From Octopus sinensis (taxonomy: Eukaryota), in NCBI RefSeq assembly GCF_006345805.1, contig NC_043014.1, positions 27,094,001 to 27,158,000 on the forward strand: a stretch of 64,000 bases of DNA. The letters run 5' to 3'. Shown here piece after piece: positions 2,327 through 55,853 of this stretch. The notes below the pieces were generated by a model. The model searched no databases. It was not told the DNA's origin and was given only the letters and a program-made list of their open reading frames with translations. Numbering within the stretch: the first letter of the stretch is position 1; every line of letters starts with the position of its first letter. Both the position numbers and the translations under genes were made by a program.

Positions 2327-2380
<54 letters not shown>

Positions 2381-3350: not shown

Positions 3351-3368
3351 AACTTTCAATATACACAA

Positions 3369-3422
<54 letters not shown>

Positions 3423-3429
3423 CGCATAG

Positions 3430-3600
3430 TTGCATTTTGTTTGTCTTTACATTCTGAGTTCAAATACTGCCGAGGTCGACTTAGCCTTTTGTCCTTTCAG
3501 GGTTGATAAAATAAGTACCAGTTAAATACTGGGATTGATATAATAAACTTACCCACTCCTCTGAAACTGCTGGCCTTCTGCCAAAATTAGAAACCAATAT
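3430..3600 (+). mobile_element. Meta-domain-like SINE 3' part
   Basis: ttctgagttcaaatactgccgaggtcgacttagccttttgtcctttcagggttgataaaataagtaccag. Confidence 0.7.
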
Positions 3601-4072
3601 ATATAAATACACATACACACACATATATAGATATAAATTTATGAAAATAATTATCCTGTCCAATTAAGGAAAAAATAAAGAAAAAAATCTTTAAACATAC
3701 ATCCAAGCTGTTTCCATTTTTACTTTTTACCTATGTGTATGTGTATGTGTGTGTATTATATACATGCATACATAATATATATTATGTATTAGATAGCTGG
3801 ATGGATAGACAGACAACATTTAGTACAGTTGTTACAAGTCAATGACTCAGCAGTCAGGATTTTCTCTTGTTTTTCTTTTTTAATTAATTAATGGAAAACC
3901 TGCACTTCTTATCTATCTCTCATCTTTATTAGTATACTATTGTGGTACTTGTTTCCCCTAAATGTTGTTGTAGTGATGGTAGCTGTGATCATCGGTTATG
4001 GTTATTGTTGTAGTGGAGATGGCTGTATCTGCAGTGGTGGCAATGGTGGTAATTGGTTGTAGTTGTTGTTGT

Positions 4073-4142
<70 letters not shown>

Positions 4143-4239
4143 GTGTAGATATATATATATAATATATATATATATATAATATATATATATATTTGTGTGT
4201 AGATATATATATATATATATAATATATATATATATATAT

Positions 4240-4415
4240 CATCATCATCATCGTTTAACATCTGCTTTTCTTGCTAGCATGGGTTGGACGATTTGACTGA
4301 GGTCTGGTGAACCAGATGGCTGCACCAGACTCCAATCTGATCTGGCAGAGTTTCTACAGCTGGATGCCCTTCCTAACGCCAACCACTCTGAGAGTGTAGT
4401 GGGTGCTTTTATACA
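4240..4415 (-). mobile_element. RTE LINE 3' tail
   Basis: (cat)n-cgtttaac...gctagcatgggttggacg...cagctggatgcccttcctaacgccaaccactc...gtgggtgc; recurs many times in the window. Confidence 0.85.
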
Positions 4416-4430
4416 TACATACATGCAGTC

Positions 4431-4462
<32 letters not shown>

Positions 4463-4843
4463 GCATATATATATGCATTCATGTATGTATATGTACATGC
4501 AGGCATTCATACATACACACATTCATACACATACATACTTATACACACAAGCACAATTGCATATATGCATGCAAATATAGCCAAACATAAATCAATAGGT
4601 AGATAGTGAAATACAAAAACCAATGACTAGATCAATAGCCATGCTGAGTGATATATGAATATAAAACCAGTAATACTGTAAAGAGAATGGAAAAGAGATA
4701 TGAACAGATTAATAGATGGGCAGACATAGATATGTTTGATAAACAGATTGCCACATAAATAGAATTAGCTGTATATGAATGACAAGTTTGGCAGATATTT
4801 GTGTGTGTGTATGTGTGTGTACATATATATATATATATATATA

Positions 4844-5671
4844 CTAAGGGGGTATCAAAAAAGGACTAGTTATGTTTTTATAAAAAAATAACTTATTAAC
4901 CTAAGTTTTAACAATATTTCCTTCGAAATAGTCACCTTGTGTGGCAATACACTGGCCCCCAGTGTTCCTACCACTTTTGGAATCCAGCCTGGAAGTTGAC
5001 TTCCATAAACAAGTCTTCTGCAATTCACTCTTACTCTTGACAGTAGTGTTAAAATGATGACCTTGGAAAGAGATGGAAGTCCACAAGAGCTAAATCTGGT
5101 GAATAGGACAAGTGCAGAAGCAATACCATGTTGATTTTGGCAAAAAGCTTATGAGTGAGAAGAGCTTGGTGACAGGGTGTATTGTCATCATGAAGAATCC
5201 AATTCTTCATCAGCCACAGATCCAGTTGCTTTCACCAAATGTCCTCCCTCAAACACTTCAAAACATCATCGATTGTCCTCTAACGATCCTCATGCACAAA
5301 CTGATGAACTTTCTACACATTTCCTGGTGTGATATTCGTGGTAGGTCTTCCAGATTGTTTATCATCTTAAGAAATGTTCTTCCACTTTTGAAGCACCTAT
5401 GCCATTCGAAACATTGTGTACAACCCATTGCTTCATCATCATAAGCTTGCTGAAGCATTCCCAATGACTTTGTAGCAGGCTTCCCAAGTATAACACAAAA
5501 TTTTACATTGGCTCTCTGTTCCTGTCCATGACAAAAATCACAAACTACACATACATGTAATCACAAAAACACAGCGATGTCACTTGACATACTACTTCAT
5601 GAATATCACTGCTAGTTCTCACTGCGTATGCAACTGAGTGCTGCCATATGAGAACTCTTTGATACCACGTG
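4844..5671 (-). mobile_element. Internally deleted mariner element with both TIRs
   Basis: ggtatcaaaa at the left end and tttgatacc at the right end, flanked by TA. Decayed transposase pieces: QGDYFEGN; MGCTQCFEWHRCFKSGR (HTH region). Confidence 0.8.
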
Positions 5672-5749
5672 TATATGTGTGTGTGTGTGTGTATAACAGC
5701 TGAAACTACACTCATATGAATCTAGTGAGGAATCCAATAGCACCTCTTG

Positions 5750-6290
5750 TTTAATCTATAGCAAAACTGATAATATCCATAGAGTGATACATAATACATA
5801 ATATTTTTTGCCAGTAGCAAGCAGAAGGTAATATTAATAAGCATTATTGTAGCTGTAAGAGTAAATTAGTAGGTCCACTTCAAGGACAATACCTCAGGAA
5901 AATCCTAGTTTATAGATGTACAGTAACAGCTGACAGTATTTTAGTTATTACATAAGATCATGTTCTACTAACTTTAAACAAAAATTATGTAACGATCTTT
6001 CTTCATTCAAAAATAGGTAAAAATATGAATTGCATAAGTTTTAGTAGGTTCATCTGGACTTTAAAGGATAGGGATACTGAATATGCTATTAAATGGGTAA
6101 TTATTAGTAGCACTTCACCATATACTATTGGGAATTCAAGAGGTGGTCTGTGCTTGGAAGAAATATTTCATATTTTTGCCTCTATTATTAAATTATGGAA
6201 AAGAACTAACAGTAAATTGCACACATTCACTGAGAAAAATATTTAAGTATTTTCTAAATAAAGATTTTTAATTAGAAACCACATAGAAGG
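5750..6290 (+). mobile_element. Second PLE GIY-YIG fragment (decayed)
   Basis: ORF 6025..6246 SRFIWTLKDRDTEYAIKWVIISSTSPY...GLCLEEIFHI is homologous to ORF 18..527; upstream frames give PLQGQYL...LVYRCTVT. Confidence 0.75.
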
Positions 6291-7594
6291 GCACAAAATT
6301 TATCCTAGTCTAATAATCGCAAATTTATTTTGGTTAGATTTTAACAAATTCACACTAAATGTCACAATTATATTTTCTATTTTTTACTTTTTTGTGAATT
6401 GAGACAAAATATGATTAGAATTTCAACTTACTTTATTCATCTCAATTAATACTAGACTTCTAATATTAAAAAAAGTGTAAAACTTTATTGATTACCCAAA
6501 CCAAAACAATATTTCTTCTTTCTTTCAATACCTTTTAAATTTGTCCATTTATCTTATATGGTAACGTACTATCCTCATTATGAGTGGTCAGTGATGTGAA
6601 TACATCCTGACCTAATTAAGTTTTTTTTTTGTTATCTACTGTCAAGTGTATAAAGTAATCAGCCAGAGTGGGGAAAGTTCTCAGATGGAACTATAATGGT
6701 CTAGTCTTTATGACCGAGACAGGCTCCCTAGTTTGCCTTGGTTGTGAAGACCAAGGGATCAGCTATGGTCAGACCTGCAGAGAGATGGATGCTGTCAGGT
6801 TTACATGCCATCATAACACTATATGATGAACAAGCCAGAAAATAAATAGCAATATGGATAGATAGACAGAGAGAGACAGAGACAGACAGACAGACAGACA
6901 GGCAGGCAGGCAAACAGACAGACAGACAGACAGATAGACAGATGCAGAGATACAAATTAAAGGATAAATTGATAGATACAAAGAGAGTAAAATAAAAATT
7001 GAAGGTGAAACTATGAAGTCAGTGTCTTCTTTTACAGTTAATTTTGTAGTTTTATTATATATTTTGAATTTCAAATTATGAGTGCAGTCCCACTGCTTGG
7101 CACCATTGGCTAGTGTCTTCTACTATGGCCCCGGTCTAACTGAAACCTTGTGAGAGGAGTTGGTAGGCAGAAATTGAAAGAAGCCTGCAGTATATGCATA
7201 TGAGTGTGTGCATGTGTGTATGTGTTTGTATATGTGTAAGTGTGTGTATGTTTGTGTCTCATTTTCTGGCATTGTGTGAAAATTGTAAATGAATCTTCCT
7301 GTCATACAAAGCAATGTCATTCATTTCCAATATTCTTCATACTTAGCTAAGGAGAAATGTTGCCTTGGTTAGGAACAAGTGTGGGTTGACAACAGGAAGA
7401 GCACCCAGATAGAAAATTTGTCTCTATAAACACCATCCGACCCAGGCAAGCATGGGAAAGTAGACTTTAAAATGACGATGGTATGTGTATGTATTACTGT
7501 GCATGTGTGTATGTACATACACACACACACACAGAATGCAGACAAGTATTTGTGTACATGCATGTGTGTGTGTGCATATGTATATATATATATA

Positions 7595-8792
7595 CCAGCT
7601 TAAGGTGACCCGCTCTACGTGCGGGTAAGAGTGTGGTTGTTATTTTCTGTTGCATCCTTTCAGCACGTAAAAAGCACCATCCGAACGTGGCCGATGCAGC
7701 GCCGCCTTGACTGGCTTCTGTGCTGGTGGCATGTAAAAAGCACCAACCAATCGTGGCTGCTGCCAGTGCCCCTACCCCCGTGGCACCTGTGCCGGTGGCA
7801 CGAAAAAAGCACCCACTACAGTCACGGAGTGGTTGGCGTTAGGAAGGGCATCCAGCTGTAGAAACACTGCCAGATCAGACTGGAGCCTGGTGCAGCCTCC
7901 TAGCTTCCCAGACCCCGGTCAAACCATCCAACCCGTGCTAGCACGGAAAACGGACGTTAAACGATGATGATGATGATGATGATTCTCCCTCTTTGTTTCT
8001 CTCTCCTTTCTCTCTCCCTTTCTCTCGGACTTACTCTTCCTTTCTCTCGGACTCTCCTTCGCTTTCTTTTACTGTTTGTCTTTCTCTATCTATCTCTCTC
8101 CCATTTATAAACAACAAAAGATCTTGAGTAAGTTGAGAAAGAAAGTAGTTTGAAAGATCAATCATAAATATCAGGCAGTGACAACGGAAAGGTCTGCTTC
8201 AAGGCAGAAAGCAAAACACTAACATTTAAAAGGGACAGACGAACTTGTGAGCTGAATAAAAATAAAAAAATATTGGAAACCAAAGTTTGAAAGGATAGAA
8301 TCTGAGGATAGTAGAGTCACCATGGCACGCATTTCTTAACGACGGACAGTAATATAGTGGCAGTTTAACGGCTGGCGTAAAATTTTGAACTTGATGTAAA
8401 AGAAAATTCCTAAACACTAAGCTTTGAAGTGATTCTTTCTCATGACAGTAGACTCACCATGGCAAAAAGTCAAAACTTCTTCATCATGGACGGCAACACA
8501 TTGACGATTTAAAGGCTGGCACAAATTTTTTAGCTTCATGTAACAGAGAATTCCTAAACACCCGCTCCTGTAAATTTTAATCCCCTTCAAGCCCCATTTA
8601 GACCTCTTTTCACATTTTGCTTAATATAACCCGATTTCATTCGGGTCTACTTGGGTCACATTTTATAAGCTGAGGAATTTTGTCCTAGAGGTCACGCCTT
8701 TCATTTGAGGAAAAAAATAGTTGCCATGCAAACTCGCCAGCACTTTTAACATAGGTGTGCATATTTTCAGCACAACCGACCACATAATGCAC

Positions 8793-8842
<50 letters not shown>

Positions 8843-8920
8843 TTATATATATGTATGTGTGTGTGTGTGTACGCATTATATATACAAATGTATACAAATT
8901 ATATATATATATATTATATA

Positions 8921-8960
<40 letters not shown>

Positions 8961-9682
8961 TAAATTAGAGATAAAACCATTATTAGGCAAATCAAACAGT
9001 GAAAAACATAAACGAAAACATAAAAATAAAAATATAATGTACAAAATATATAAAATATAAAATTTAAAAATTTAAATTATTTAAATTTAAAATCAAAATT
9101 ATTAATTTATATTTATAATTCTTTTTTTAAATATATATAACTATCAAAAAGTATTAAAAAGTTTAATATACATATTCATATATAGAACACACACACACAC
9201 ACACACATATATATACATTTACCCAATAAATATCTGATTCATAATATTTGTTCTCATGATTGTGTGGTGGTGGTGGTGGCGATGATAATTCTGTCTATGA
9301 ATGCAGACAGACGTAGAGAGAGAGAGAGAGAGTGTGAAAGTGCTGTCAAAGGCAGTGAGGGGGAGATATAGAACGCTGTTTGACGACGTTATAAAGAGAA
9401 AGTGAAGGGGAGTTAGACGCTGTTAAACGTTATATATAGAAAGTAATGGGAAGAGAGGAAAGAGAGTGAGTGACGGAGGAAGACAGATACATAAAAGAGT
9501 GAGAGTAGACTTGTCAAAGTGCGTTTTTGGCCCTAGCAACGACACAGGTATCCTCACCTCATTTTACATGTCCCTGTAAATTTTGGAGTCAATCCGACGG
9601 GATCTAGTGGCCATTAACCCGTTCTCAATGCCAAAACCAGACAAACAAACAAACTTTTTGCATTTCAGATTTATAATATAGA
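7595..9682 (-). mobile_element. Non-autonomous Helitron (~2.1 kb) with nested insertions
   Basis: On the minus strand it starts TCTATATTATAAATCTG at 9682 (preceded by A) and ends in hairpin acccgc-acgtaga-gcgggt followed by ...CTGG at 7595 (followed by T): 5'-TC, 3'-CTRR, A|T insertion site. Confidence 0.7.
7645..7985 (+). mobile_element. RTE LINE 3' UTR/tail nested in the Helitron
   Basis: Repeated gtggcacgtaaaaagcacc modules, ggaagggcatccagctgtagaaac, (gat)n tail. Confidence 0.85.
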
Positions 9683-9749
9683 TATATATATGTACACATA
9701 CATGCACACACAGAAATACACACAAACACACATACACACACATATCATC

Positions 9750-10020
9750 ATTATATGCAAAGATGCATGGCCTAGTTGTTCGGCTACTGCACTCATGATC
9801 ATTAGATCGTGGGTTCAATTTCCTGACTGGGTAGCATGTTCTGTTCTTGAGCAAAATACTTCATTTCACATTGCTCTCATCCCACTTTCGATCAGCAGGT
9901 AATGTTGGCCTACTTACCTAGCCATGGGAGTGGTGTCATTTGAAGGTTAAAACAATGCAAAAGCACATTGTGATCAGCAATGTGTAACAACATCTGATAA
10001 CCTGGTCAGTCACATAGTTA
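9750..10020 (+). mobile_element. tRNA-derived SINE with CORE/V-like block
   Basis: A-box-like tggcctagttgtt, B-box-like gggttcaattt, then ttgagcaaaatacttcatttcacattgctc. Confidence 0.65.
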
Positions 10021-10424
10021 CATGATACATATATACTTTCAATAGTTTGACTTTTTCACTGTTCATTTTTCCACCTTTTGCTTTTTATCCTTCCATCCAT
10101 CCACTTTCCATTACTAGTCTTATAGGACAGTTTCCATTGTGTTTCTATACATTTGTCTTGTCTTAGAGCCGCACAGACTTTATTTTGTTTGTATATTCAC
10201 ATTTATATGTTGTTTGTTTTCATCACTGTCCTCAATGTTTGCGTGCTATTCCCAACAGCTTTTTACTGTTGATGCTGCCAAAAATGAATAATATTATCAT
10301 TAAAAGCATGAAATTGTAATGATTTTTTTTGGATGATAACTGACAAGGAAAGAGTACGTTCATCTCTTGTGTGTAGAATTTCCATTCATTCTTTGTCAAG
10401 CTTCTGCTCAACTTTTGAAACATA

Positions 10425-10471
<47 letters not shown>

Positions 10472-10472
10472 G

Positions 10473-10870
10473 CACAGGCATGGCTGTGTGGTAAGAAGCT
10501 TGCCTTCCAACCACATGGTTCTTGGTTCAATCCCACTATGTAGTACCAAAGGCAAGTGTCTTCTGCTAAAGCTTCAGCCGATCAAAGCTTTGTGAGTGGA
10601 CTTGGTGTATGGAAAATGGAAGAAACCTGTCATACATATATATATATATGTGTGTGTGTGTCTATGTTTGCAACCCCCACCATCGCTTGACAGCCAATAC
10701 TGGTGTTTTTATGTCCCCATAACTTAGCAGTTCAGCGGAAAGAGACTGATAAAATAAGTACTAGGCTTACAAAGAATAAATGTTGTGTTGATTTCTTCAA
10801 CTAAAATCCTTTGAGGTGGTATCCCAGTACAGCCAGAGTCAAATGACTGAAACAAATAGAATGATAAAAG
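10473..10870 (+). mobile_element. Composite tRNA-derived SINE (head, CORE-like block, internal microsatellite, tail)
   Basis: ggcatggctgtgtggtaagaagcttgc...ggttcaatcccact...ggcaagtgtcttct...(TA/TG)n...ttgacagccaatactggtg...aaatgactgaaacaaa. Near copies at 41745-42150 and 50688-51050. Confidence 0.85.
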
Positions 10871-11260
10871 AATATATATATGTTAAAGTGATAGGGAGGA
10901 GATGGATAATATGAACAGACAGACATACACAGACTGATCAACACTTACATAGAGAAAAGTTGAGAGACTAATAGATTAGAATGCAAATGTATGTATAGAT
11001 AAGAAGGTATCAAATAAACTACATGCAGAGGGTGAAGCATTTAAGCATTCAAGCATTCATTAAATGGATACCAAAGACAGGAATCTTGTTCCAGATAAGT
11101 TTCAGTGCAGACAGGTGGTAATTAGAGATTTCCTTTCTCCCCTTTCTTTCGCTACTGCAATTAGGATACAATCATTCATATATATTGAAGAACATAAGAG
11201 CAAATGGAACAGTTTACATGCACAAAAAAACACAGGGATATATGGAATATATATGTGTAA

Positions 11261-11291
<31 letters not shown>

Positions 11292-11300
11292 TATGTACAC

Positions 11301-11337
<37 letters not shown>

Positions 11338-11367
11338 ATACACACATATATGTACACACATATATAT

Positions 11368-11410
<43 letters not shown>

Positions 11411-11699
11411 ATACATATATATATATAATATATATATATATATAATATATATATACATATATGTATACACACAATTATATATATATTTACGCACACACAA
11501 ACACACACACACACACATATATATACACACACACACAAAAGAAACACATGGATATATGGAATATAAATGAATATATACATATATTCAAACAACGAAAAAA
11601 ACAGAGAAAGGAGAGATGCAACATTAAGAACATTCCCTTCATCAGTTGTTCCCTGTTTTATCTTTATATACATATACATATATATATATATATATAAGC

Positions 11700-11905
11700 A
11701 AGAAGTTGAGATTATAAGAGATAATGGTGTCATTGAGACCCAAAGGTCTCAAAACTAACTTTGACTTAATTTTTCCTCTCACACTGTCTCCGATGAAGGG
11801 ATATTATTATCAATTAATATTCTACAAACAGCTGTAAGACCTTCTATCTATAAATGCTCTAATATCTATACAGCCTTGGTTTTTTTTATCTCATTATGCA
11901 AAAAA
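11700..11905 (+). mobile_element. PLE-type terminal repeat fragment with a degenerate hammerhead-like motif (11786-11840)
   Basis: gtct-CCGATGA-agggatatt...aatattctac-AAAC-agct-GTA-agac. The same family lies on the minus strand at ~47800-48260, downstream of a GIY-YIG fragment. Confidence 0.55.
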
Positions 11906-11908
11906 TTC

Positions 11909-11944
<36 letters not shown>

Positions 11945-12121
11945 CTGTGTGTATATATATATATATGCATACATATATATGTATATATACATATATGTAT
12001 ATACACATATATACATATACTCTTTTACTCAGTTATTTGTTTCGGTCATGTGAGTGTAGCCATGCTGGAGCACCACCTTTTAGTTCAAGAAATCGATACA
12101 CACACAAATATATATGTAAAC

Positions 12122-12505
12122 AGTGGAGGTGCAATGGCCCAGTGGTTAGGGCAGCGGACTCGTGGTCGTAGGATCGCGGTTTCGATTCCCAGACCAGGCG
12201 TTGTGAGTGTTTATTGAGTGAAAACACCTAAAAGCTTCATGAGGCTCCGGCAGGGATGGTGGTGATCCCTGTTGTACTCTTTCACCACAACCTTCTCTCA
12301 CTCTTACTTCCTGTTTCTGTTGTACCTGTATTTCAAAGGGCCGGCCTTGTCACTCTCTGTGTCACGCTGAATATCCCCGAGAACTACGTTAAGGGTACAC
12401 GTGTCTGTGGAGTACTCAGCCACTTACATGTTAATTTCACAAGCAGGCTGTTCCGTTGATCGGATCAACCAGAACCCTCATCGTCGTAACCGACGGAGTG
12501 CTTCC
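12122..12505 (+). mobile_element. Well-preserved tRNA-derived SINE
   Basis: A box tggcccagtggtt, B box ggtttcgattccc, CpG-rich body; a decayed relative is at ~20850-21120. Confidence 0.85.
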
Positions 12506-12746
12506 CACCATATATGTAAACATATATATATATATACAAATCTATATATACATATATATATACATAAATGCATATACACACACACATACACACACACATA
12601 CACACACACACACACACATACATACATGCATACATACATATACAGTGAATGAAGTATAAGAATTTCGGTCCTTACCTCCTATATAAATCTATACATATAT
12701 ATACATACATATGGATACATATACATACATATATATACATACTTAG

Positions 12747-12789
<43 letters not shown>

Positions 12790-12939
12790 CCTATTTATAT
12801 ATACACATATATATATATACACACATATATATATACACATATATACATATATATAACATCTCTGTTAATACTTTCACTATTATATGGTTTCAATTTCAAT
12901 TACTTTCATACATATTAATTTCATTTCTCTTACCTTCAA

Positions 12940-14350
12940 TATTTATTTATATGCATGTTTGTATATGTATATATCTTTACACACACACACATATATATAT
13001 ATATATATGCATACACACGCACACGTTTAAACGCATGCACACACACATACATTATTTGTATCCAGGTGCACGCTTTTTGGTTGAGGGATTGATGGAGTTC
13101 GATTTTTTTGGTGTGGGTGGTCGTGGTTCCGCAGGCGCGCGCCTGGGGAGCGGCCAGCCCCATATGCGTGCGTTGTCTGTTTGTGTGTCGTGTGTGTGTG
13201 TGTGAGTATACATACATGCACACGCGTACACATACATACCTACATACATACACGCACACACACTTACACACATACATACATACACACATACACACACACA
13301 TATACATACATACACAAGACATACATACAGACACACACCTATACACTCACACATACATACATACACACCCACATACACACGCACACACATACATACACAC
13401 ACACGCACACACGCATACATACATACATTACGCCCACACAACTCCAGAGGAAACCCCACGCAATACACACACATACATACATACATTCATACTTTCATTC
13501 ATACATACATACATACATACACACACACACAAACATACACAGACACACACACATACATACATACACACATACATATATACACACACACATACACACATAC
13601 ACACACACATACATACACACACACATATATGCACATACACATATACATACACACATGCATACACACACACACATACATGCATGCATGCATACATACATAC
13701 ATACACACACACACATACACACATACACGCATGCACACATACATACATACATACACACACACATACACGCATGCACACATACATACATACACACACACAT
13801 ACATACATACACACACACACACTTCCACACATACATACATACACACATACACACGCATACATACATACATACACACATACATACACGCACACACACATAC
13901 ACATATCCACACACACATACTTACATACACTCATACGGACATACATACACACTCACACATACATACATACACAGGCACTAATTCACATACACACCGACAC
14001 ATACATACACACAACATATACCTCCACGCACACGCACACATACACATACGTACACACACATACATACGCACACCAAAACATGTGCACACATATGCACGCA
14101 CACGCGCAAAAAGAAACTCAATGCACATACATACACACGCACACACACACAAATGAACCCATACACACATCCCATACAGCACACAACCATACATACACAC
14201 ACACAATTATACATATATGCACGTACAAGCACACACACACACATACACTTAGTTAAGCACAGTTACTCGCCATACACACAAAAAAACGCACACGTACACA
14301 CACACATACTACAACAAAACACACACACGATACATATACATGCACACACA
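12940..14350. repeat. Long compound (CA)n/(CATA)n/(CACATA)n microsatellite array with a short GC-rich interruption at ~13060-13190
   Basis: Direct reading; source of the His/Thr/Tyr/Ile and Val/Cys/Met pseudo-ORFs. Confidence 0.95.
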
Positions 14351-14559
14351 CATACCTCCCTGTTTCTGACCTGCCTTCCTGACTTGCTAGGGTACCACCA
14401 CACCACTCCTTTAATTCTACTACTGCCTGCCACTAGCCATTGTCCTCCATACACACACACGCACACACACACACACACCCTTGTCATCTCGCACATTCCT
14501 TCTTTGATTCAGCTCTCCTGTTTTTAAAAACATGTTCCTCCCTTTTCACCACTTCCGTC

Positions 14560-14770
14560 TTTTCAGTATGTGACCTCGTGAAGACTACCTGCATTTTTTT
14601 TCCCTCTGTCCTCCCGCCTCGGGATCTTTCTTTCTCCTATGTTTCCGACAAAGAGCTCCGCTCAAAACGTCATACCCTCCTTCTTCCCTTCTTTCCTGAG
14701 CATCCAATAATACTTTATTTGTTCCACATCCTCGCGTTGTTGTCTTTTTGTTTTCTTGTTTGGATTAACT
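14560..14770 (+). mobile_element. PLE-type terminal repeat fragment with a degenerate minimal hammerhead (14641-14675)
   Basis: gttt-CCGACAA-a-GAGC-tcc-GCTC-AAAA-CG-TC-atac; same layout as 56438-56473. Confidence 0.5.
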
Positions 14771-14804
14771 TTATATATATATATATATATAGATAAAACC
14801 GCCT

Positions 14805-15012
14805 GACTGGCCCTTGTGCTGGTGACACGTAAAAGCACCCACTACACTCTTGGAGTAGTTGGCATTAGGAAATGCATTGCTTGACATTAACTGTAGAAAC
14901 TCTGCCATATCAAGATTGGAGCCTGGTGCAGCCATCTGGTTCGCCAATCCTCAGTCAAATCGTCCAACCCATGCTAGCATGGAAAGCAGACGTTAAACGA
15001 TGATGATGATGA
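14805..15012 (+). mobile_element. RTE LINE 3' tail
   Basis: gtaaaagcacccactacactc...ccaacccatgctagcatggaaagcagacgttaaacgatgatgatgat. Confidence 0.85.
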
Positions 15013-15051
<39 letters not shown>

Positions 15052-15075
15052 TATATATATATTTATATATATATG

Positions 15076-15919
15076 TAAAATTAAATAAGGGTAGAAATTG
15101 ATATTAATCAATTAAAACCAGTAGCTTAGCATATTTTTAAAAAATCCGAAGACAAAAAATGATGCTACATACAAAATTTAGAGGACTGACTACTAAAAGT
15201 GGATAACCTATATGCTAAACATAGACGTCAAATCGCCATTACCATGAAGAATGTGTTCTCAAGAAAAATCTCAGCAAAAAACTAAAATGTAAGAATAAGC
15301 AAGGCAAATGAAAATATATGAAATAAAAAACGATTACCTATGTACCAATTGGTTTCACTTGTTAATATTTACGTATATGGATACGTAAACATCTGCAAGA
15401 TCATCATCATAGTCTGTCGTTTACAAAATACAATTTCCAGAACTAGACACAGAATGCTCAACCGAAATCCAGCATGTATAAAGTTCTACAAATTATATTT
15501 AGATGTATCTTTTCAAATGCCCTCACTTTGGCGCACTGAAACTGGAAACTACTCTGGAGTTAATGAACTACAGCAGTGAATTTACAGGTTAAAGAACATT
15601 TTTTATATTTAAAATTAAATAAGGGAAGAAATTGATATTAATCAATTAAAACCAGTGGCTTAGCATATTTTTAAAAAATTCGAAGATTAAAAATTGTGCT
15701 ACATACAAAATTTAGAGGACTGACCACTGATGATCTTGCAGATGTTTGTGTGTCCATATACGTAAATATTAACTAGTAAAACCAATGGTACATTGGTAAT
15801 CGTTTTTTATTTCATATATTTTCATTTGCCTTGCTTATTTTTACACTTTGGTTTTTTGCTGAGATTTTTCTTGAGAACACATTCTTCGTGGTAATGGTGA
15901 TTTGCCGTCTATGTTTAGC

Positions 15920-15924
<5 letters not shown>
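15076..15924. repeat. Rearranged A-B-C-A-B(inverted) repeat
   Basis: 15076-15194 is directly repeated at 15610-15728; 15209-15406 is the reverse complement of 15728-15924. Confidence 0.85.
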
Positions 15925-15944
<20 letters not shown>

Positions 15945-15950
<6 letters not shown>

Positions 15951-16292
15951 TATGCAAACATGTATATAAATACATATTAAAAGTAATAGAAATGAAACTA
16001 TTATATAGATACATAATGAAAGTAATTGAAATTGAAACCATATAATAGAGAAAGTATTAATAGAGATGTTATCATTTCACTTTTGACACATAACAGAGAA
16101 AGTGTAAGAGATTGCTCAGGGCTTGAATTAGGTAAGAAGTTGAAAATTTTTTGGGCCCATGGCAATACATGGACCCTATGTAAGGCATATATAAAATTTG
16201 AATGAAACCCATTGTGTAGTTCTTAAGTCTTAGGGATTCACACAGATAAACAAACACATAGGCAGACACATTCTCAGTTTCATATATTAAGA
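15945..16292 (-). mobile_element. 5' part of a non-autonomous Helitron-like family
   Basis: Minus strand begins TCTTAATATATG; related copies at 17650-18010 (-) and 12855-12935 (+). Confidence 0.55.
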
Positions 16293-16609
16293 TAAACACA
16301 TATATACATACATATACATATGCATATATACATACATATATATAAATACACTCACACACACATAAATATACTTACATAAAAATACATATACATGCATGTG
16401 TGTGTGTGAGAGTTGAAACATCTCAAGTGTAACTGTCCGAAATGGTCGTGACTTCTGGTTCTTGACTGATGAAAGAAAGCCAAGAATGTCCCACTTGTTT
16501 TGCCTGTCCTTCTAATTGTTGCTTTTCTTGTCTGCCTTTGTGTCATCTATCTGTCCAAATGTTTAAATTGCATTTTTGTTCCAATTTTATATATATATAT
16601 ATATATATA

Positions 16610-17180
16610 CGTGAGAAGACCAGGCAGGACAAGTGAGTCCAGCCCACTTATGCATGCCTTTCCTCCCTTGGACACACAAAGACCTGTTGAGGCAAGCGAA
16701 GTTGATATCGAACCTCATCCGACGACAGGCACCCATGCCAACCCCCTTTGATTGCGAAGACCTGTTGGGGCAAGTGAAATCGAAATCGAAATTGAAATCG
16801 GAATCGGAATCGAAATTGAACCAATCCTATGACTGGCACCCGGCAGATGCCAGGACCCCTGGACTGGTGGTACGTAAAAAGCACTATCCGAATCGTGGCC
16901 GATGCCAGTGCCGTCTTGACTGGCTTCCGTGCCGGTGGCACGTAAAATGCACCAATCCGACCGTGGCCGTTGCCAGCCTTGCCTGGCACCTGTGCAGGTG
17001 GCACGTAAAAAGCACCCACTACACTCACAGAGTGGTTGGCATTAGGAAGGGCATCCAGCTGTAGAAACATTGCCAGATAAGACTGGAGCCTGGTGCAGCC
17101 TTCTGGCTTCCCAGATCCCTGGTCGAACCGTCTAACCTATGCTAGCATGGAGAACGGACGTTAAACGATGATGATGATGA
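16610..17180 (+). mobile_element. RTE LINE 3' UTR
   Basis: gacctgttg..gcaag, (gaaatc)n, tandem gtggcacgtaaaa-gcacc modules, (gat)n tail; similar to 60520-60640. Confidence 0.85.
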
Positions 17181-17304
17181 TATATATATATATATATATA
17201 TAAGATCAGCAACAATTTAGATTCAAATGAATATGGTACTTAATTTAGAGGCATCAGAATTTTGTATAGTGTTACCCATAAAAATTTGTGGGGTGATAAT
17301 AATA

Positions 17305-17414
17305 AAAAATAAGCAACAAGAATGATACCGGTAATTTAGTACAATTGTTTCATACTACATGTAGTATGAAACAATTGTACTAAATTACCGGTATAATTCT
17401 TGTTGCTTATTTTT
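17305..17414. repeat. Loop-less palindrome, 55-bp arms, 1 mismatch
   Basis: Centre ...catactaca|tgtagtatg... at 17359/17360; arms carry GAAACAATTGTA. Confidence 0.95.
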
Positions 17415-17491
17415 GTATATATATATATATATATATATGTATATGTATATATATATACATTTAATGAAGTGTAAGGATTTCAGTCCTCACC

Positions 17492-17540
<49 letters not shown>

Positions 17541-17571
17541 TTTACTCACATATGTATTCATACATAGATAT

Positions 17572-17643
<72 letters not shown>

Positions 17644-17649
17644 GACAGA

Positions 17650-18010
17650 CAGACATACAAACATGTATATAAATACATATTGGAAGTAATAGAAATGAAA
17701 CTAATATATATAGATACATAAAGAATGTAACTGAAATTGAAACCATATAATAGTGAAGGAATTAATAGAGATGTTATTGTTTCACTTTTGACACGTAATA
17801 TGGAAAGTGTAAGAGATAAGAGATAGCTCAGTGCTCGCATTAGGTAAGAAGTTGAGAATTTTTTTGCTCATTACACTGCATGTACCATAAGTAAGGCATG
17901 TATAAAATTTGAATGAAATCCGTTGAGTAGTTCTCGAGTTTTAGGGATTCACACAGACAGACAAACACACAGACAAGCAGACACACATTCTCAGTTCTAT
18001 ACATTAAGAT
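17650..18010 (-). mobile_element. 5' part of a non-autonomous Helitron-like family (second copy)
   Basis: Colinear with 15945-16292 along its length; minus strand begins TCTTAATGTATAG. Confidence 0.55.
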
Positions 18011-37399: not shown

Positions 37400-37578
37400 T
37401 AAATATCTCAGCTATTAGATAGTTTTTAAAGGTGGAACTTGGAGTAGATAAAATTATAAATAATAGCATGTAGTATACTGGGTTAAAAACACCCTTAGAT
37501 GGAAATCATCAAAGGCTGTGCATTGGATTCAAACCCACATAAACATGGTTGATGTTCTAACCATTATACCAAAGCAGC
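37400..37578 (-). mobile_element. Decayed tRNA-derived SINE whose 5' end is the LTR insertion site
   Basis: Minus strand: A box tggtataatgg (37571-37561), B box ggtttgaatcc (37535-37525). Confidence 0.55.
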
Positions 37579-37580
37579 AC

Positions 37581-37858
37581 TGTGGTGTATGCAAGAGATT
37601 CGAAATAAAGGCACCTACCTTCTCTTCACTCAGATGGAGACCCTTCAGCGGTAATGGATCCTTCAACACAGCCCGACCCGAACGCTAGAAATAGCAGCTG
37701 CTTCTCCCAACCTTAACAACGTGCTGGCCCGTCTTCCTCGCTTGACGACTGCGATCGAAAAGGGCCAAATGCCACCCTACCAGCGCACGCGTCACTGCTG
37801 CCCCTTCCGGTCAGCCCCAAGTTCCGATCAGCTCCCCAGCTGCTGACATCATCCCACG
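37581..37858 (-). repeat. 3' LTR
   Basis: About 20 substitutions versus the 5' LTR by manual alignment, no indels. Confidence 0.95.
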
Positions 37859-37889
37859 CGCCACCCTGATCTTAAAGATCACAATCTCT

Positions 37890-40555
37890 CTACTCCATGT
37901 TGTAGTCCACCATCCAACCGGGAGGGCGCCTTGCGCATTGAGATCTTCTGAAGCTAGGCACCTCATTCTCCCCCTTTCCACAATCGTCGTCTGTCGAAGC
38001 GACAATCCTGCAAAGGTCCAAGACGTGTCGCGGCATTCCATCCACGGAGACGTTGTTTCTGGAATTGACCGGCGTCACCATTCCTCTGCTCCATTGAGAC
38101 ATACAGCGCGCCTTCGGTGGCTTTACCCAGACTTCCTCCCCTATTTTCACACAAGCGGGTCCCTTCTCTTCCTCGTGGCCCTCCGGCGCTTTACTCGAGT
38201 GCCTCCATTCATATTTAAATACAGCTCTCTGCGGCACAGATTCTTCAGCTTGTCCAGATCGGGGAGACAATTTGTACCAAAAAACTGCTTCAGGCGGCGA
38301 AATGTGCCCTCTTTTCGCTATGACCTTGACTGTCCGATGGTGCCTTTCTACGACCCCGTTGTCCATTAGCAGTTCTTCCGCGGGACCTCTCTCTAAAAAT
38401 ATCCCATTCAAGATCTGCGCGCAATCTCATCAGCAATGCCCGTTCTCAACTCCCTCCAAATGGCCAGCCAGCCCAGCCCGCAGTCGACCATGGAGAGATA
38501 CATTCCCTGACGGTAGTGCGTCACATCCACAGCTAGCCTTTTCCAGTTGTGCTCCACCGAAAGGTTTCCCTGCTCATGCCCACATGGAGCAAGGTCAATG
38601 GACTGACACCTGTTGCAGCTCCCGACCACTTTCTGGATGCTTCTCCTAGTGAACGTCACCATCAATTTTCTTCGCCAGATTCAGGGTCCTGTCAACACCC
38701 AAGTGATGCATAGCATGCAATCTCTTCAGTTCAGTGTCATCCAACCGACACGCCCCAGCTATCTCTTTCCGGGCCTCCCCTGGTTCCTCCAACCATGCCC
38801 TTTTCACCCTGGTCAGTGCGTCCACCCTGTTTTTCTCCAAAGGCATGAAAATCACGTTCAGCTTCAGTCTGAACTCGGCAATCAATTCTCCTAGAACTCC
38901 TAGACTGCGCTTCACCAACATCTCCGTGGCACCTTTCGTCCGAACTCTCCTTTCACCGGTAATCACCGATCCTACCCAGCCAAGCACAGTGGCCGAAGCC
39001 GTCCGGATTTCAATTATTCGCAGCCCCCATTTCAGGGCCAAGTTCACCCCTTTCAGCACCACGTCTAATTCGGCGACATTGATGTGGTTGAAGTCATCTG
39101 CTTTCCGAAGCCTGGCTGCGTCCTCCACCGCAGTGCCTTCGATCACCAACACAATCCCTATCGCTATACTGCTAGCATCACACCAGACGATACCACATTC
39201 CGTCTTGGGCACGTACCAGTTCCCCCTGACTGGGTCTTCCGCTCTCGTCCTCTCTAGGATTTCCTGCATCATCGCCACCGTCCCTTCTCCCACCTTGTCG
39301 CCCCAACTCTCCCCCTCCGCTCATCTCTTGGTGTAACTGCATGCCGTGCGCAGCCATCCAGCAATCAGGTAGTGACCAACCAACTTCCCACACACCAAGA
39401 ACAGCTCTCCCCTGCTGACACTGGAACTCAGCTCTGGGATTTCATTCCCTCTCCGGAACACCAATTCACCCGATCTATCTCTTCACAGCTTCAGCCCCAG
39501 TGCGGCTTCCTCTTCCATCGACTCTGGTGGCTTTGCAATCAGTCTGAACTTCTCCAGATGTCTAACTACCTCGTTGGCTGGCACTACAGTTTCGTCCACC
39601 AAAATGTTGTCAATGTAGGAGCTGGTGGCCTTTCTAATCTTGCCGTCTTTCCCTAGGACAGACTTAAGCACTGCCACCATGATCTTCGGAGCGGAATTCA
39701 GTTCGAAACCCAACCTGGTTAAGCAGTACGTCCGGCCTTTGTACCGCACCAGCTGATATCGCCACAGTTTATCGCTCACATGGAGCTACAAGTATGCCGA
39801 TTTCAAGTTGACAATCGTCGCTACCTTGGTCGACTGTCTCCATGCATTTAACGTCTCGCCACAAACGTCCGTCGCCTCACCTCCCGTGTGACACGATATA
39901 TGCTGGTTTAGCTCCCTGAAGTCCGGCACCAGTCTGACTTTTCCCTTCGTAGGCTGCACCACCGCCATCAGGGGTAGCACTTCGCCCGCTACCTCCTCCT
40001 CCCAAGGGACAAGGACCTTTCCTCGATCCACCTCTCCACCTCGGCTTCAAACTCGACCCTGGCGTGGCTTTTCAGGATATGCTGGTAGCAGCTCACTCTG
40101 TTTTTCAGCATCGGGGGCTCGTCCTACCATCGACACTCAATCGTCCAACGCTGACCATCGAACGCCGCCTGAAAATCTTTGTCCTTGATGGTGTAAGTGG
40201 CACAGTCCCTCGCGGGGCTCTGCTCTCTCTGGCAACCCTGACTCACAGTGCACCTCGCCCCCACGCTTCCAAACATGACCTCATCTCCCACAATACTGAC
40301 GCCACTGAGGCGGTTGATGGCGTCCATCCCCATCACCACATCAACCCCATCTATCACGCGTTCAGCTACAATTACATGCAGCCTTAGCGTCGCGCCGCAC
40401 ACTACTATCTCTACCTTGCTGCTGCCTTTACAACGGATTTCGCTGCCGTCGACCGCCCGTACGCTACTTGCCCCGTTCCATTTCTTCGTCACCCTTGAAG
40501 TCACAAGGGTGGTCTTGCAGCCCGTATCCACGAGGGCCTTGAACGTCTTCCCTCA
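37890..40555 (-). pseudogene. pol: pol (protease, RT, RNase H, integrase), disrupted
   Basis: PR FKALVDTG; RT YCLTRLGFELNSAP and YIDN (from YIDD); RH VWCDASS...HINVAELD; IN H-x3-H...CNRC, LAVDVT, and LLMDNGVVERHH with the D..E spacer deleted. Confidence 0.9.
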
Positions 40556-40589
40556 GCCTCCACATCAATTAATGCAGCGTCTCCAAAAT

Positions 40590-41344
40590 CGCCTCTACTC
40601 GTTTGCGGGAAATGTTCGAGAGGCAGCAACTTCCCTGCAGTCGTTTCCCTGGTCGCAATCACAGGCGATGTGCCCTGTCTGCCTGCATCGATAGCAAACG
40701 GGCCCCGTTTACATACACTCCCTTGCCATGTGTGGCCCCTGACATCTAAAACACCCACCTGAGAACGGCCACTGTCATTGCACGGTAGGCTTCCGCACGT
40801 CTTTCTCCGGCAGTTGGCCGTCTTTACGCACCTCTGTCACCGCCATTGCTATCGCCTTCCACCCAGAGTGTCGCATCAACACACGGGCTTGAGTCACAAG
40901 TTCGCTCAGCGCCATCTTTTTACTCCCGGCCAATTATTGTAGGTGAATCCCTACATCATCGGGGAACCCATTTACGAACGCCAGTCACGCTGCTCTCTCC
41001 AGCCCTTCTCCTGTAAACCCAGCCAGCGTTGCTTACCTTCGAACTTCTGCCGCGTATTCGTCCACCTGTCCTCCCGTTCATCTAATCGTACCCAGCTTGG
41101 CAAAAGCTGTGTAGGCATCCCTCAGACATTGCTCTATCTTTTCCTCGCTCAGACATTCTTCCTCGTCCATCTCAAGATATAGCGTCAACGCGCTCCCTTC
41201 CAAATACAGCGCCATAAGACTTGCCACATAGCTTACACCTTGCAGTCTTGCCACCAGCCTGATTTTACGCATCCAGGCCACTACATCGCCTTCTCTATTA
41301 AAGGGTCTGATGATGTCGCTGGCGATCCTGATTTTCGCTTCCAT
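40590..41344 (-). pseudogene. gag: gag with two CCHC zinc knuckles, disrupted
   Basis: Starts MEAKIRIASDIIRPF; knuckles CFRCQGPHMAREC and CYRCRQTGHIACDC with an in-frame TAA between them. Confidence 0.85.
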
Positions 41345-41367
41345 CGTGGTGACGTCTTATACGGAGT

Positions 41368-41379
41368 GCCGAAATAGCT
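41368..41379 (-). other. Non-canonical primer-binding site candidate AGCTATTTCGGC
   Basis: Directly abuts the 5' LTR; reverse complement GCCGAAATAGCT equals nt 1-12 of metazoan tRNA-Phe(GAA) as I recall it. Confidence 0.6.
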
Positions 41380-41657
41380 TGTGGTGTATGCAAGAGATTT
41401 GAAATAAAGGCACATACCTTCTCTTCGCTCAGATGGAGACCCTTCAACGGTAATGGATCCTTCAACACAGCCCGACCCGAATGCTAGAAATAGCAGCTGC
41501 TTCTCCCGACCTTAACAACGTGCTGGCCTATCTTCCTCGCTCGGCGACCGTGATCGAAAAGGGCCGAATGCCACCCTACCTGTGCGCACGTCACTGCTGC
41601 CCCTTCCGGTCAGCCCCAAGTTCCGGTCAGCTCCCCAGCTGCTGACGTCATCCCACA
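41380..41657 (-). repeat. 5' LTR
   Basis: TGTGG...CCACA termini; homologous to 37581-37858. Confidence 0.95.
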
Positions 41658-41744
41658 AGCACTTCATTAGTAAGAGCAACACTTTGAAAATAGATGGAGA
41701 AAATTTAAAGTGTTGGTTGGAATAATGGTTAGAATTTCTGTCTA

Positions 41745-42150
41745 GGTGCAGGTGTGGCTGTGTGGTAAGAAGCTGCCTTCCCACCCATATGGTTCTGGGT
41801 TCAGTCCCACTGTGTGGCACCTTGGGCAAGTGTCTTCTACTACAGATTTGTGCCAATCAAAGCCTTGTGAGTGGATTTTGTAAATAGAAACTGAAAGAAG
41901 CCCATCATATATATATAGATGTGTGTTTTTGTGTGTGTGTGTATCTGTGTTTGTTCCCCCCCCCCCACTTAACAACCAGTGTTGGTCTGTTTATGTCCCC
42001 ATAACTTAGAGGTTTGGTTGAAAGAGACTGATAGAATAATTACCAGGTTTTAATAAAGATAAGTCCTGGGGTTGATTTATTCAACAAAAAGTTCTTCAAG
42101 GTGGTGCCCCAGCATGGCCACAGTCTAATGACTGAAACAGATAAAAGAAG
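41745..42150 (+). mobile_element. Composite tRNA-derived SINE
   Basis: gcaggtgtggctgtgtggtaagaagct...gggttcagtcccactgtgtggcaccttgggcaagtgtc...gtctaatgactgaaaca. Confidence 0.85.
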
Positions 42151-50242: not shown

Positions 50243-50687
50243 AACAGACGTGTGTGTGTGTGTGCATGCACGTGCATGTGTGCGTGTATGCATGTGCGTG
50301 GGTGTGGATGTGTACCAAAAGAAGTTATTTGATGGCATTCTTTTGTTTGAAGCAGGAAAATTGTCAACCGATCAAATGGTGGATCATTTGATTGTTCATT
50401 AATATCCATAAAATTTTTTATTTCTTTATGATTTGGAGAGAGCAGAGATTGAAAGAGAGGAGAAAATGAAAAGGCAACATTTGCTTGGAAGTGAGAGCAG
50501 AAAGTAAGAGATGTATGTGTGTATATGAAATGGAGATGTGTGTGTGAGAGAGAGAGTGAGTGAGTGAAGGTGTGTGTTGTAATGCATGTATTTTTTGCAT
50601 GTATGTGTAAGTGGCACTCACTTGCTTTCTCTCTCTCTTTCATACACACACACACACAATATCTTTCATATACATGTACATAAATAC

Positions 50688-51050
50688 AGGCACAGGAATG
50701 TCTGTGTGGTAAGTAGCTTGCTTACCAGCCACACGGTACCAGGTTCAGTCCCACTGCGTAGCACCTTGGGCAAGTGTCTTCTACTATAGCTTCAAGCTGA
50801 CCAAAGCTTTGTGAGTGGATTTGGTAGACGGAAACTGAAAGAAGCCCGTCATATGTATATATGTGTGTGTGTGCACATGTTTGTGTGTTTGTGATATCAG
50901 TGTGTTTACGTCCCCGTAACTTAGTGGTTTGGCAAAAAGACTGATAGAATAAGTACTAGGCTTACAAAGAATAAGTCCTGGGGTTGATTTGTTCAAACTA
51001 AAGGCAGTGCTCCAGCATGGCCACAGTCAAATGACTGAAACATATAAAAG
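50688..51050 (+). mobile_element. Composite tRNA-derived SINE
   Basis: Same head, CORE-like block and tail as 10473-10870 and 41745-42150. Confidence 0.85.
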
Positions 51051-54260: not shown

Positions 54261-55306
54261 GTAACCGGCTCTTCGAAGTCTTTAATACTTTACACCTACC
54301 ATATGTGTGTACATACACGACGTACCCAGTCACAAACGTTCTCATTGCTTCGCCTTGTTTACTCCCGAACTATATTCTTAGTTTTTTTCTTTTATTTTTA
54401 TAAATTTAAATGTCTGACTTTTGATTAACATCATGTCTGATTACCAAAGGAAAAACACCATGTCACTTGATGTCAGACATCGAAATACACGCAAACACAG
54501 ACTCAGTTCGTGTATATCGATCCAACGATGGGTATGTTCGTGTATAATCACCTCGTGCGTGTAAACACTATCATTGGGGATACCGATGTTATTATATGCT
54601 CACCATCCATTGCTGATTATGTGAGACACGGGCAAAATCTACCTTTTTATCAGCTTAGTTAAATTTCTTCTGTGCGGTCAGAAGAAATTTAATGCGGTCT
54701 ATTGCAATATTTATGTAATAGACTAATATTGGAGGACAAGATCGCCAACTCAGATACTTTGCAGTACAAGATCTAAGATCAAATCAACAATGCTCAGTGA
54801 CCGTCACTTGTGATGATTTGGTGTTGTGCATTGCATAGGCAGAGGAAGAGAGAGAGCGGGTTGAAAAGATAGAGGTCAATGATAAAATTGTTAAATAGGT
54901 ATACGAAGTTGTCTTTTATTTAACAAACAAATAGGCCCCACGGTTAGACCACAAGCTTTCAAGTAGCTGGGAATGAAACCAAACTAGTTGGCTTTGTTTT
55001 TTATTAAAGAAACATCTGATTTCTGGGCTCTTCAATGTTCTATAATCTAACCATGGAGTTATCCCCCGAGATGAATCAATGATTTGCACAATGTCCATAT
55101 TCACAACCCTACAGTCATTGGACAGTACCTTAACTTTCACTTCTACCATGCACACAGTGTGAAGAAACGGATTGTTCACTGCCATTTTTTTTAGTACTTA
55201 TTCTATTGGTCCTTTTTGCTAAACTGCTACGGGATGTAAACCCACCAACACCGGTTGTCAAGTGGTGATAGGGACAAACACAGAAACAAAGGAAGGCACT
55301 TGTACG

Positions 55307-55365
<59 letters not shown>

Positions 55366-55420
55366 CATACATACATATATATACGTATATATATATACAT
55401 ACATATATATATGTACATAC

Positions 55421-55482
<62 letters not shown>

Positions 55483-55486
<4 letters not shown>

Positions 55487-55853
55487 AAATAAATGAAAGA
55501 ATGGAGTTGAACGACAAATTAACAAAATTCCTTTATTTTCAACAAATGTTTCGAAGGCTGCATATTCCTAATTTCGAAGGAATAAGGAGTGCATTATGCC
55601 GCCTTCTCATCAGGAAAAACTTTTAGGTGACTGCCCACACAGAGCCCATAGCTATGGGCTCCGTGTGGGCAGTCATCTAAATGTTTTTGTGCATCTTGAT
55701 GCTAACATAAGTTCCTTGTTTTTCCTGATGAGAAGGCGGCATAATGCACCCCTTATTCCTTCGAAATTAGGAATATGCAGCCTTCGAAACATGTCGAAAA
55801 TAAAGGAATTTTGTTAATTCGTCGTTCAACTCCATTCTTTCATTTATTTGTAT
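55483..55853. repeat. Nested fold-back: ~137-bp outer arms (55483-55620 / 55718-55853) plus a loop-less 30-bp inner palindrome (55622-55681)
   Basis: Outer arms differ by 3 substitutions and one 2-nt indel; inner centre is cccatag|ctatggg. Confidence 0.95.
55712..55808 (+). ncRNA. Type I hammerhead ribozyme candidate
   Basis: Stem I TTTTC/GAAAA plus TTCCTT/AAGGAA; CTGATGA at 55725-55731; stem II GAAGGC/GCCTTC, extended; GAAA at 55786-55789; palindromic stem III ACATGT; GUC site at 55793-55795. Confidence 0.8.

Follow-up and report, generated by a model that had tools for sequence, protein, structure and literature searches.

How does a retrotransposon begin to copy its RNA when the site at which a primer should anneal shows none of the usual signs of one? 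The question is raised by a long terminal repeat (LTR) retrotransposon in a 64,000-nucleotide stretch of the Octopus sinensis genome (contig NC_043014.1, positions 27,094,001 to 27,158,000), which we call the window and whose coordinates are used throughout. The element occupies positions 37581-41657 (4,077 bp), with the sense strand on the minus strand. Its 5' LTR is followed without a gap by a 12-mer that is perfectly complementary to nucleotides 1-12 of the transfer RNA (tRNA) tRNA-Phe(GAA). We consider it probable that this 12-mer is the minus-strand primer site, where the 5' end of tRNA-Phe anneals and a cut after nucleotide 12 yields the primer.

The limits of the element were fixed via the 5-base flanks outside both LTRs, which form a target-site duplication: the upstream copy at 41658-41662 reads AGCAC on the plus strand (GTGCT in the sense of the element), and the downstream copy at 37576-37580 is identical. 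The 5' LTR (41380-41657, minus strand) and the 3' LTR (37581-37858, minus strand) are 278 nt each, carry TG...CA termini, and make up a direct repeat (D12) with 93% identity. In element sense, the 5' LTR (41657 to 41380) is followed by the candidate primer-binding site AGCTATTTCGGC (41368-41379, minus strand), a 23-nt leader and the gag ATG at 41344. The plus strand reads GCCGAAATAGCT at 41368-41379, and TGTGGTG... starts at 41380; the minus strand reads ...CACCACA, then the 12-mer, then ACTCCG..., so that the 12-mer lies flush with the inner edge of the LTR. It occurs once in the window, where about 0.008 exact matches are expected by arithmetic (128 kb on two strands).

The printed tRNA sequences agree with this reading of the site. 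A template for human tRNA-Phe(GAA) starts with GCCGAAATAGCT followed by CAGTTGG (PMC11706605), the same 5' end is found in the primer of another study (PMC10505166), and two probes for the 5' part of Drosophila tRNA-Phe both end in ...GAGCTATTTCGGC (PMC7038984; PMC6542536). Nucleotides 1-12 are the same in human and fly and complement the site at all 12 positions, beginning with nucleotide 1. Pairing stops between nucleotides 12 and 13, where the C at tRNA position 13 faces the terminal A of the LTR, and there is no base before nucleotide 1. A first-pass annotation, made from the letters of this DNA, had claimed both the 12/12 match ending at the LTR edge and the absence of any TGG, hence of a site of the 3'-CCA type. 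The former holds against the human and fly sequences, and the latter against the sequence between the LTR and the gag ATG; the observation in the window is therefore confirmed.

A match of this kind could still be a chance resemblance in a decayed copy, and the state of the window element, which is old and broken as judged from its diverged LTRs, stops and frameshift, would favour such a view. The survey of relatives ruled it out, and we give it practically no credence. We gathered junctions between 5' LTR and leader from 11 loci in named genomes and from 51 metagenome loci, the latter chosen via an alignment of pol. The set comprises 42 junctions in 35 distinct contexts and two further junctions, and all 44 carry the same 12-mer or a close variant, including those of copies with LTRs that are 99-100% identical. 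The identical 12-mer is present in 16 of the 35 distinct contexts. Every named host except one crab has a site of the tRNA-Phe type, either exact or with one mismatch. The exact AGCTATTTCGGC was found in Octopus (the window, L001 from O. sinensis, and L002 twice), Argonauta (L062), Aplysia (L006), a leafhopper (L060, from a Macrosteles assembly), and Hydra vulgaris (L061). The O. sinensis loci L001 and L002 belong to assembly GCA_006345805.1, L060 to GCA_028750875.1, L061 to GCA_038396675.1, and the crab locus L063 (Petrolisthes manimaculis) to GCA_034508575.1. Single-base variants were found in a cuttlefish (L003) and a bryozoan (L005); the bryozoan change is C to T within a CpG, where G:U pairing is still permitted. 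Outside the site, no alignment can be made between the LTRs and leaders of these elements. In addition, a test anchored on gag instead of on the motif gave the same picture, since all 40 matches to the gag N-terminus (tblastn, collected loci) have a 12-mer of this kind 0-260 nt upstream, 27 of them found directly and the other 13 at positions taken from the junction list. The chance of such a motif per 330-nt stretch is about 1.6e-4 by arithmetic.

The first-pass annotation had made its proposal depend on the 12-mer being kept among copies and on intact copies having no site of the TGG type. The first of these expectations was borne out across phyla. As to the second, the young copies L002, L061, L062 and L063, with LTRs 99-100% identical and in some cases with intact gag and pol open reading frames (ORFs), carry the 12-mer, and no TGG-type site was seen in them. 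The Argonauta hians copy (L062:3625-8031) has LTRs of 351 nt that are 100% identical and a TCAGT duplication; these LTRs end in ...AAG and not in the usual ...ACA, and the site nonetheless follows directly. A second, internally deleted element of another family was observed at L002:881-2754, 3 kb upstream of the intact L002 element, with 248-nt LTRs (95% identical and 1.6 kb apart) and the same 12-mer at L002:1123. No junction was found at the Oratosquilla locus L004, which is probably a 5'-truncated copy.

The position and extent of the conserved block bear on what the 12-mer does. The site always lies shortly ahead of gag. LTR pairs were mapped for nine junctions, that of the window among them, and in eight of these the site abuts the LTR end; in the exception, the leafhopper L060, the 100% LTR match ends 70 nt short of the site. 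When the 35 contexts are counted column by column, they show a single base in 34-35 contexts for the last three bases of the LTR and for site positions 1-6 and 10-12, and in 32 contexts for position 9. Position 7 is split 18/17 between two bases, position 8 shows all four, and positions 13-30 are without conservation (at most 0.5 bit). Judged by these columns, the conserved block stops at base 12, where the 5' end of a mature tRNA would lie.

Such a block could also act in another capacity. The 12-mer might capture tRNA-Phe, or serve packaging, dimerisation or translation control, while synthesis starts by another route, such as an uncut tRNA used via unusual chemistry. This explanation gains from the fact that priming was deduced and not directly seen, and from the very short leader (0-40 nt), in which several functions may overlap. 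However, the end of the U5 region of an LTR is set by the start of minus-strand synthesis, and it coincides with the 5' edge of the site at all of the mapped junctions but the leafhopper one, where the match stops short by the 70 nt noted above. Nor is another primer site apparent: no TGG-type site is present in the window, the canonical site for the 3' end of tRNA-Phe is absent from the window and from 61 relative loci, and no self complement was found. In several relatives the gag ATG lies only 0-3 nt after the 12-mer (L032:224, L021:3607, L036:1508 and L022:469 are examples of this near-nil leader), so that an alternative primer site is excluded there because there is no room for it. A role other than priming thus appears unlikely to us. 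Near the site, no recurrent second stretch complementary to other parts of tRNA-Phe was consistently found.

Self-priming, as in Tf1 and sushi elements, would have the transcript of the element fold back on itself, with its 5' end on the site. The length of the site (12 nt as compared with 11 nt in Tf1) and the lack of TGG are in keeping with it. In contrast, the window holds no complement of the 12-mer with up to two mismatches, the best pairing in the 400 nt upstream with G:U allowed is no better than in shuffled controls at any of 29 junctions, and none of 38 elements has a sense-strand complement of the site with up to one mismatch anywhere. The absence of a self-priming complement in the LTR, as first reported for the window alone, thus extends to the relatives. 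Moreover, the LTRs are unrelated between families and the site is nonetheless identical, a pattern that self-priming does not predict. We regard this route as very improbable. The site does not complement the first bases of the transcript, which in the Tf1/sushi class lie in the 5' LTR and pair with it; it neither starts with TGG nor complements a CCA end, as in the canonical class; and it does not match an anticodon stem-loop, nor does integrase precede reverse transcriptase (RT), as in Copia and Ty5.

Not all junctions carry the 12-mer of the window. Besides AGCTATTTCGGC (16 contexts), we distinguished AGCTATCGCGGC (seven contexts), AGCTATCACGGC (four contexts), AGCTATCTAGGC (two contexts and the crab copy) and AGCTATCCCGGC (two contexts), as well as one-off variants in four contexts. 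The four other types differ from the window 12-mer at positions 7-9 only, one of them also at position 6. Variant types are located, among others, at L063:4974 (the crab Petrolisthes manimaculis), L007:141 and L008:135, and in L010, L011, L014 and L021. The site types are interleaved on a rough neighbour-joining tree of RT that has no support values. A literature search with the variant 12-mers turned up no tRNA, and a full-text search with the 12-mer of the window returned only primers and probes for tRNA-Phe.

These variants open the way to an explanation in which another trans-acting RNA with the same 12 bases at its 3' end primes synthesis, be it a dedicated small RNA, the transcript of a tRNA-derived short interspersed nuclear element (SINE), or, in some hosts, a different tRNA. 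It draws on the variant types, one of which, in the crab, would not fit fly-type tRNA-Phe, and on the tRNA-like SINE sequence that adjoins the window element. On the other side, the commonest type of site is the exact complement of tRNA-Phe nucleotides 1-12, conservation ends at the base that pairs with tRNA nucleotide 1, as expected for a mature 5' end, and the identity between Hydra, octopus and insect calls for a partner as conserved as a tRNA. We know of no other RNA with tRNA-like conservation that matches the site. No Rfam family was detected in the window, and no tRNA gene in the window or in any relative locus collected. We therefore see a different priming RNA as an improbable explanation, about on a par with a role outside priming. 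On the sequence pattern, a trans-acting and highly conserved RNA must pair with the 12-mer, and the start of tRNA-Phe fits it exactly.

Several points nevertheless weigh against priming by the 5' end of tRNA-Phe. The junction set was partly built by motif search, which makes the column profile partly circular, and this is offset by the gag-anchored test. The tRNA-Phe of cephalopods, cnidarians and crustaceans was assumed to be identical to that of human and fly. Four other 12-mer types occur besides the one that complements tRNA-Phe. The crab copy L063 has a variant 12-mer in a young element with LTRs 100% identical, and a fly-type tRNA-Phe would mispair with it at two positions. Hence either the tRNA-Phe of decapods departs from the fly form, or the clade does not use this tRNA-Phe throughout and switches among tRNAs that share the first three bases and nucleotides 7-12. 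The 12-nt tRNA-Phe fragment, the cut, and the strong-stop complementary DNA (cDNA) are deduced from the site. Finally, a fragment of 12 nt is shorter than the range of 16-35 nt that one account gives for tRNA fragments (PMC7515703).

With these points taken into account, the interpretation offered in the first-pass annotation, priming by a cut 5' fragment of tRNA-Phe, is supported by the comparison of sequences; we infer tRNA-Phe as the partner in molluscs, the cut, the cutting enzyme, and the priming itself. The proposed course of events is as follows. The site would pair with nucleotides 1-12 of mature cytoplasmic tRNA-Phe, that is, with the 5' strand of the acceptor stem, U8, A9 and the first three bases of the D stem. 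The zinc-knuckle domain of gag may open the acceptor and D stems and so let these nucleotides anneal. Because synthesis has to begin where the LTR ends, tRNA nucleotide 12 must present a 3'-OH; consequently, either the annealed tRNA is cut between nucleotides 12 and 13, or a pre-cut fragment of 12 nt is used. The likeliest cutter, by analogy with Tf1, would be the RNase H that the element itself encodes, with the RNA duplex as its substrate and a pre-existing 12-nt fragment as the alternative source of the primer. The domain that the cut would require is present in pol, which has a retrovirus-type fold of RT, connection and RNase H. RT would then extend U12 into U5 and thereby set the LTR end. 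Later, the plus-strand strong-stop product would copy the 12-nt primer and run off at tRNA nucleotide 1, and we propose this run-off as the reason why the site is exactly 12 nt long. In retroviruses, a modified-base stop limits the copying of a 3'-end tRNA primer; run-off at nucleotide 1 would give a 12-nt site without the need for such a stop.

The proposed mechanism combines features of several known priming systems. Tf1 of Schizosaccharomyces pombe (Levin 1995, 1996) takes its 11-nt RNA primer from the 5' end of its transcript, where RNase H frees it by cleaving an RNA duplex (Levin 1996, as cited in PMC4600332). The present elements resemble Tf1, Tf2 and sushi in having a short site that lacks TGG and pairs with the 5' terminus of an RNA, and, under our proposal, in the cut at the end of an RNA duplex that is needed for the 3'-OH. 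They differ from Tf1 in that the partner is not their own transcript but a trans-acting RNA identical to the start of tRNA-Phe, and in being retrovirus-like and not chromovirus-like. Copia, Ty5 and fungal Copia-type elements use tRNA primers truncated at the 3' side (Kikuchi 1986, Ke 1999; PMC10886601), and they would share with our elements the use of a 5' piece of a tRNA in place of the CCA end. Their sites correspond to the anticodon stem-loop region, with a fragment of about half the tRNA, and have been reported only in the Copia superfamily (PMC10886601); here, in contrast, the site pairs with nucleotides 1-12, the cut would fall in the D stem, and the order of domains is protease, RT, RNase H and integrase (PR-RT-RH-IN). 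Canonical elements primed by a tRNA 3' end likewise have the site directly after U5 and a host tRNA as partner, but use the opposite end of the tRNA and a TGG. The length of 12 nt falls within the range of 8-18 nt given for retrotransposon primer sites (PMC13524379).

A 2024 survey by a Repbase curator recognised two types of tRNA primer, the 3' end and, in Copia only, the anticodon loop (PMC10886601), with self-priming as a third recognised route (PMC4600332). A recent survey of metazoan elements searched only the last 12 nt of tRNAs for sites (PMC13524379). We found no description of a primer site for the 5' end of a tRNA in the full-text literature, which does not cover subscription journals and Repbase Reports, so that an earlier mention is possible. 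Within the same literature, the earlier statement that no priming by a 5' fragment cleaved in the D arm has been described also stands. What would be new is the end of the tRNA that serves in tRNA-dependent priming.

The elements that share the site form a large, compact and apparently unnamed clade that is closest to retroviruses in its enzyme folds. The closest relatives of the window element are found in O. sinensis and O. bimaculoides. The intact L002 element of O. sinensis (positions 5841-10102 of that locus; 4,262 bp; LTRs 99% identical) encodes a 251-aa gag with a CCHC zinc knuckle and an overlapping 986-aa pol, in which the Pfam domains follow the order RVT_1, DUF7047, RNase_H/RVT_3 and rve, in agreement with PR-RT-RH-IN. 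The nearest solved structures by sequence are retroviral integrases and the RTs of HIV-2 and foamy virus, and no Ty3/Gypsy RT was among the 60 matches listed from PDB. A full-length relative was modelled with AlphaFold (AF2; predicted local distance difference test, pLDDT, 73), and its fold aligns with those of foamy-virus PR-RT and HIV-1 p66 across 660-900 columns. As indicated by domain matches and this model, the predicted architecture is the retrovirus type of RT, connection and RNase H, without env.

Our search with pol returned 684 relatives at E <= 1e-10, most of them on ENA, Logan and JGI contigs some 4 kb long, and no relatives were found in IMG/VR. Named hosts include cephalopods, gastropods, a bryozoan, crustaceans, a sea spider, a leafhopper and Hydra. 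The mapped elements measure 3.9-4.3 kb and have 5-bp target duplications (for example, L061, L006, L062 and L063); the decayed bryozoan copy L005 maps shorter, at about 3.2 kb. Among known groups, the clade is like Odin, lokiretroviruses and Retroviridae in that its integrase and RT are nearest to the retroviral ones and in the set of RT, connection or tether domain, separately acquired type-1 RNase H, and integrase; gag and pol are the only genes, with no env. Odin has been reported in sea anemones only, in a screen that included 1,710 protostome genomes, and its description is silent on primer sites (PMC9040795), as are the Troyka and Kuafuortervirus papers. Troyka and Kuafuorterviruses, which have CG...CG termini and 3-bp target duplications (PMC12440569), were considered and rejected as a placement, since the clade has TG...CA termini and 5-bp duplications. 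Of the metagenome contigs close to 4 kb in length, many are circularly permuted versions of an element or carry a pair of junctions separated by one unit (4,061 nt), as at L020:55 and L020:4116; other such contigs are L010, L012, L018, L019, L021 and L028. Forms of this kind are expected from collapsed LTRs, tandem copies or circular molecules.

In the window copy itself, all recognisable pieces of gag and pol lie on the minus strand between the LTRs. The broken gag (40601-41344, minus strand), located by tblastn with the intact L002 gag, has about six in-frame stops and covers residues 6-251 of that protein at 43% identity; the ORF that starts at its ATG spans 41344-41078 on the minus strand. 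The broken pol (37890-40552, minus strand), assembled from ORF pieces and tblastn with L002 pol, has about nine stops and at least one frameshift and covers residues 50-977 of the intact 986-aa protein at 58% identity. It encodes protease, RT, DUF7047, type-1 RNase H and integrase, with domains assigned from the relative. Directly before the 3' LTR lies the polypurine-tract region (37859-37884, minus strand), a short palindrome followed by a G-rich run; the sense strand reads ...GTGATCTTTAAGATCAGGGTGGCG and then enters the LTR. The palindrome before the G run was noted in this interval as GTGATCTTTAAGATCA in sense orientation. Palindrome and G run are also found before the 3' LTRs of relatives from Hydra, Aplysia, cuttlefish and crab (L061, L006, L003 and L063), as well as at L007:3960-4005 and L008:3950-3985. 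Kept from Hydra to octopus and crab, they presumably form a plus-strand primer region with a hairpin. With its TG...CA LTRs, 5-bp duplication, gag-pol and G-rich tract, the window element shows all the generic features of an LTR retrotransposon.

Other repeats occur around the element. An 18-nt motif is present in both of its flanks (37515-37580 and approximately 41700-41760), in inverted orientation to each other. In addition, the downstream flank shows features like the A box and B box of tRNA genes and looks like a tRNA-derived SINE; neither ARAGORN nor Rfam calls anything there. A related SINE-like family (D10) is present at 3432, 24151, 33075, 63154 and 63843. In addition, a 200-nt repeat beside the element (41726-41950) recurs 8.9 kb away at 50670-50893 with 79% identity, and the window is rich in degenerate periodic arrays of 8-14 nt that resemble microsatellites (D1-D7), many of them at 1500-17700 and 55200-55550.

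The choice of primer is a defining step of retroelement replication. If the proposal is true, pairing with the 5' terminus of a tRNA adds a new option to this step and ties a cut of the Tf1 type to the use of a tRNA. More tentatively, and without yet leaning towards it, we put forward a wider view of the family: an unnamed, animal-wide clade of elements of about 4 kb may have dropped priming from the tRNA 3' end and may begin reverse transcription instead at nucleotides 1-12 of a tRNA, after a cut in the D stem made by the RNase H of the element itself. This would amount to a third class of tRNA-dependent priming, in which the variant sites would track other tRNAs or host-specific forms of tRNA-Phe, and which site finders restricted to 3' ends would miss altogether. 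Pipelines that compare sites with no more than roughly the last 12 bases of tRNAs (PMC13524379) would accordingly score these elements as lacking a primer site. The finding may also matter for host defence. Work on tRNA fragments as repressors of retroelements, as outlined in one source (PMC7472051), deals chiefly with 3' fragments, which pair with the primer site; in the hosts of this clade, 5' fragments of tRNA-Phe could take that part.
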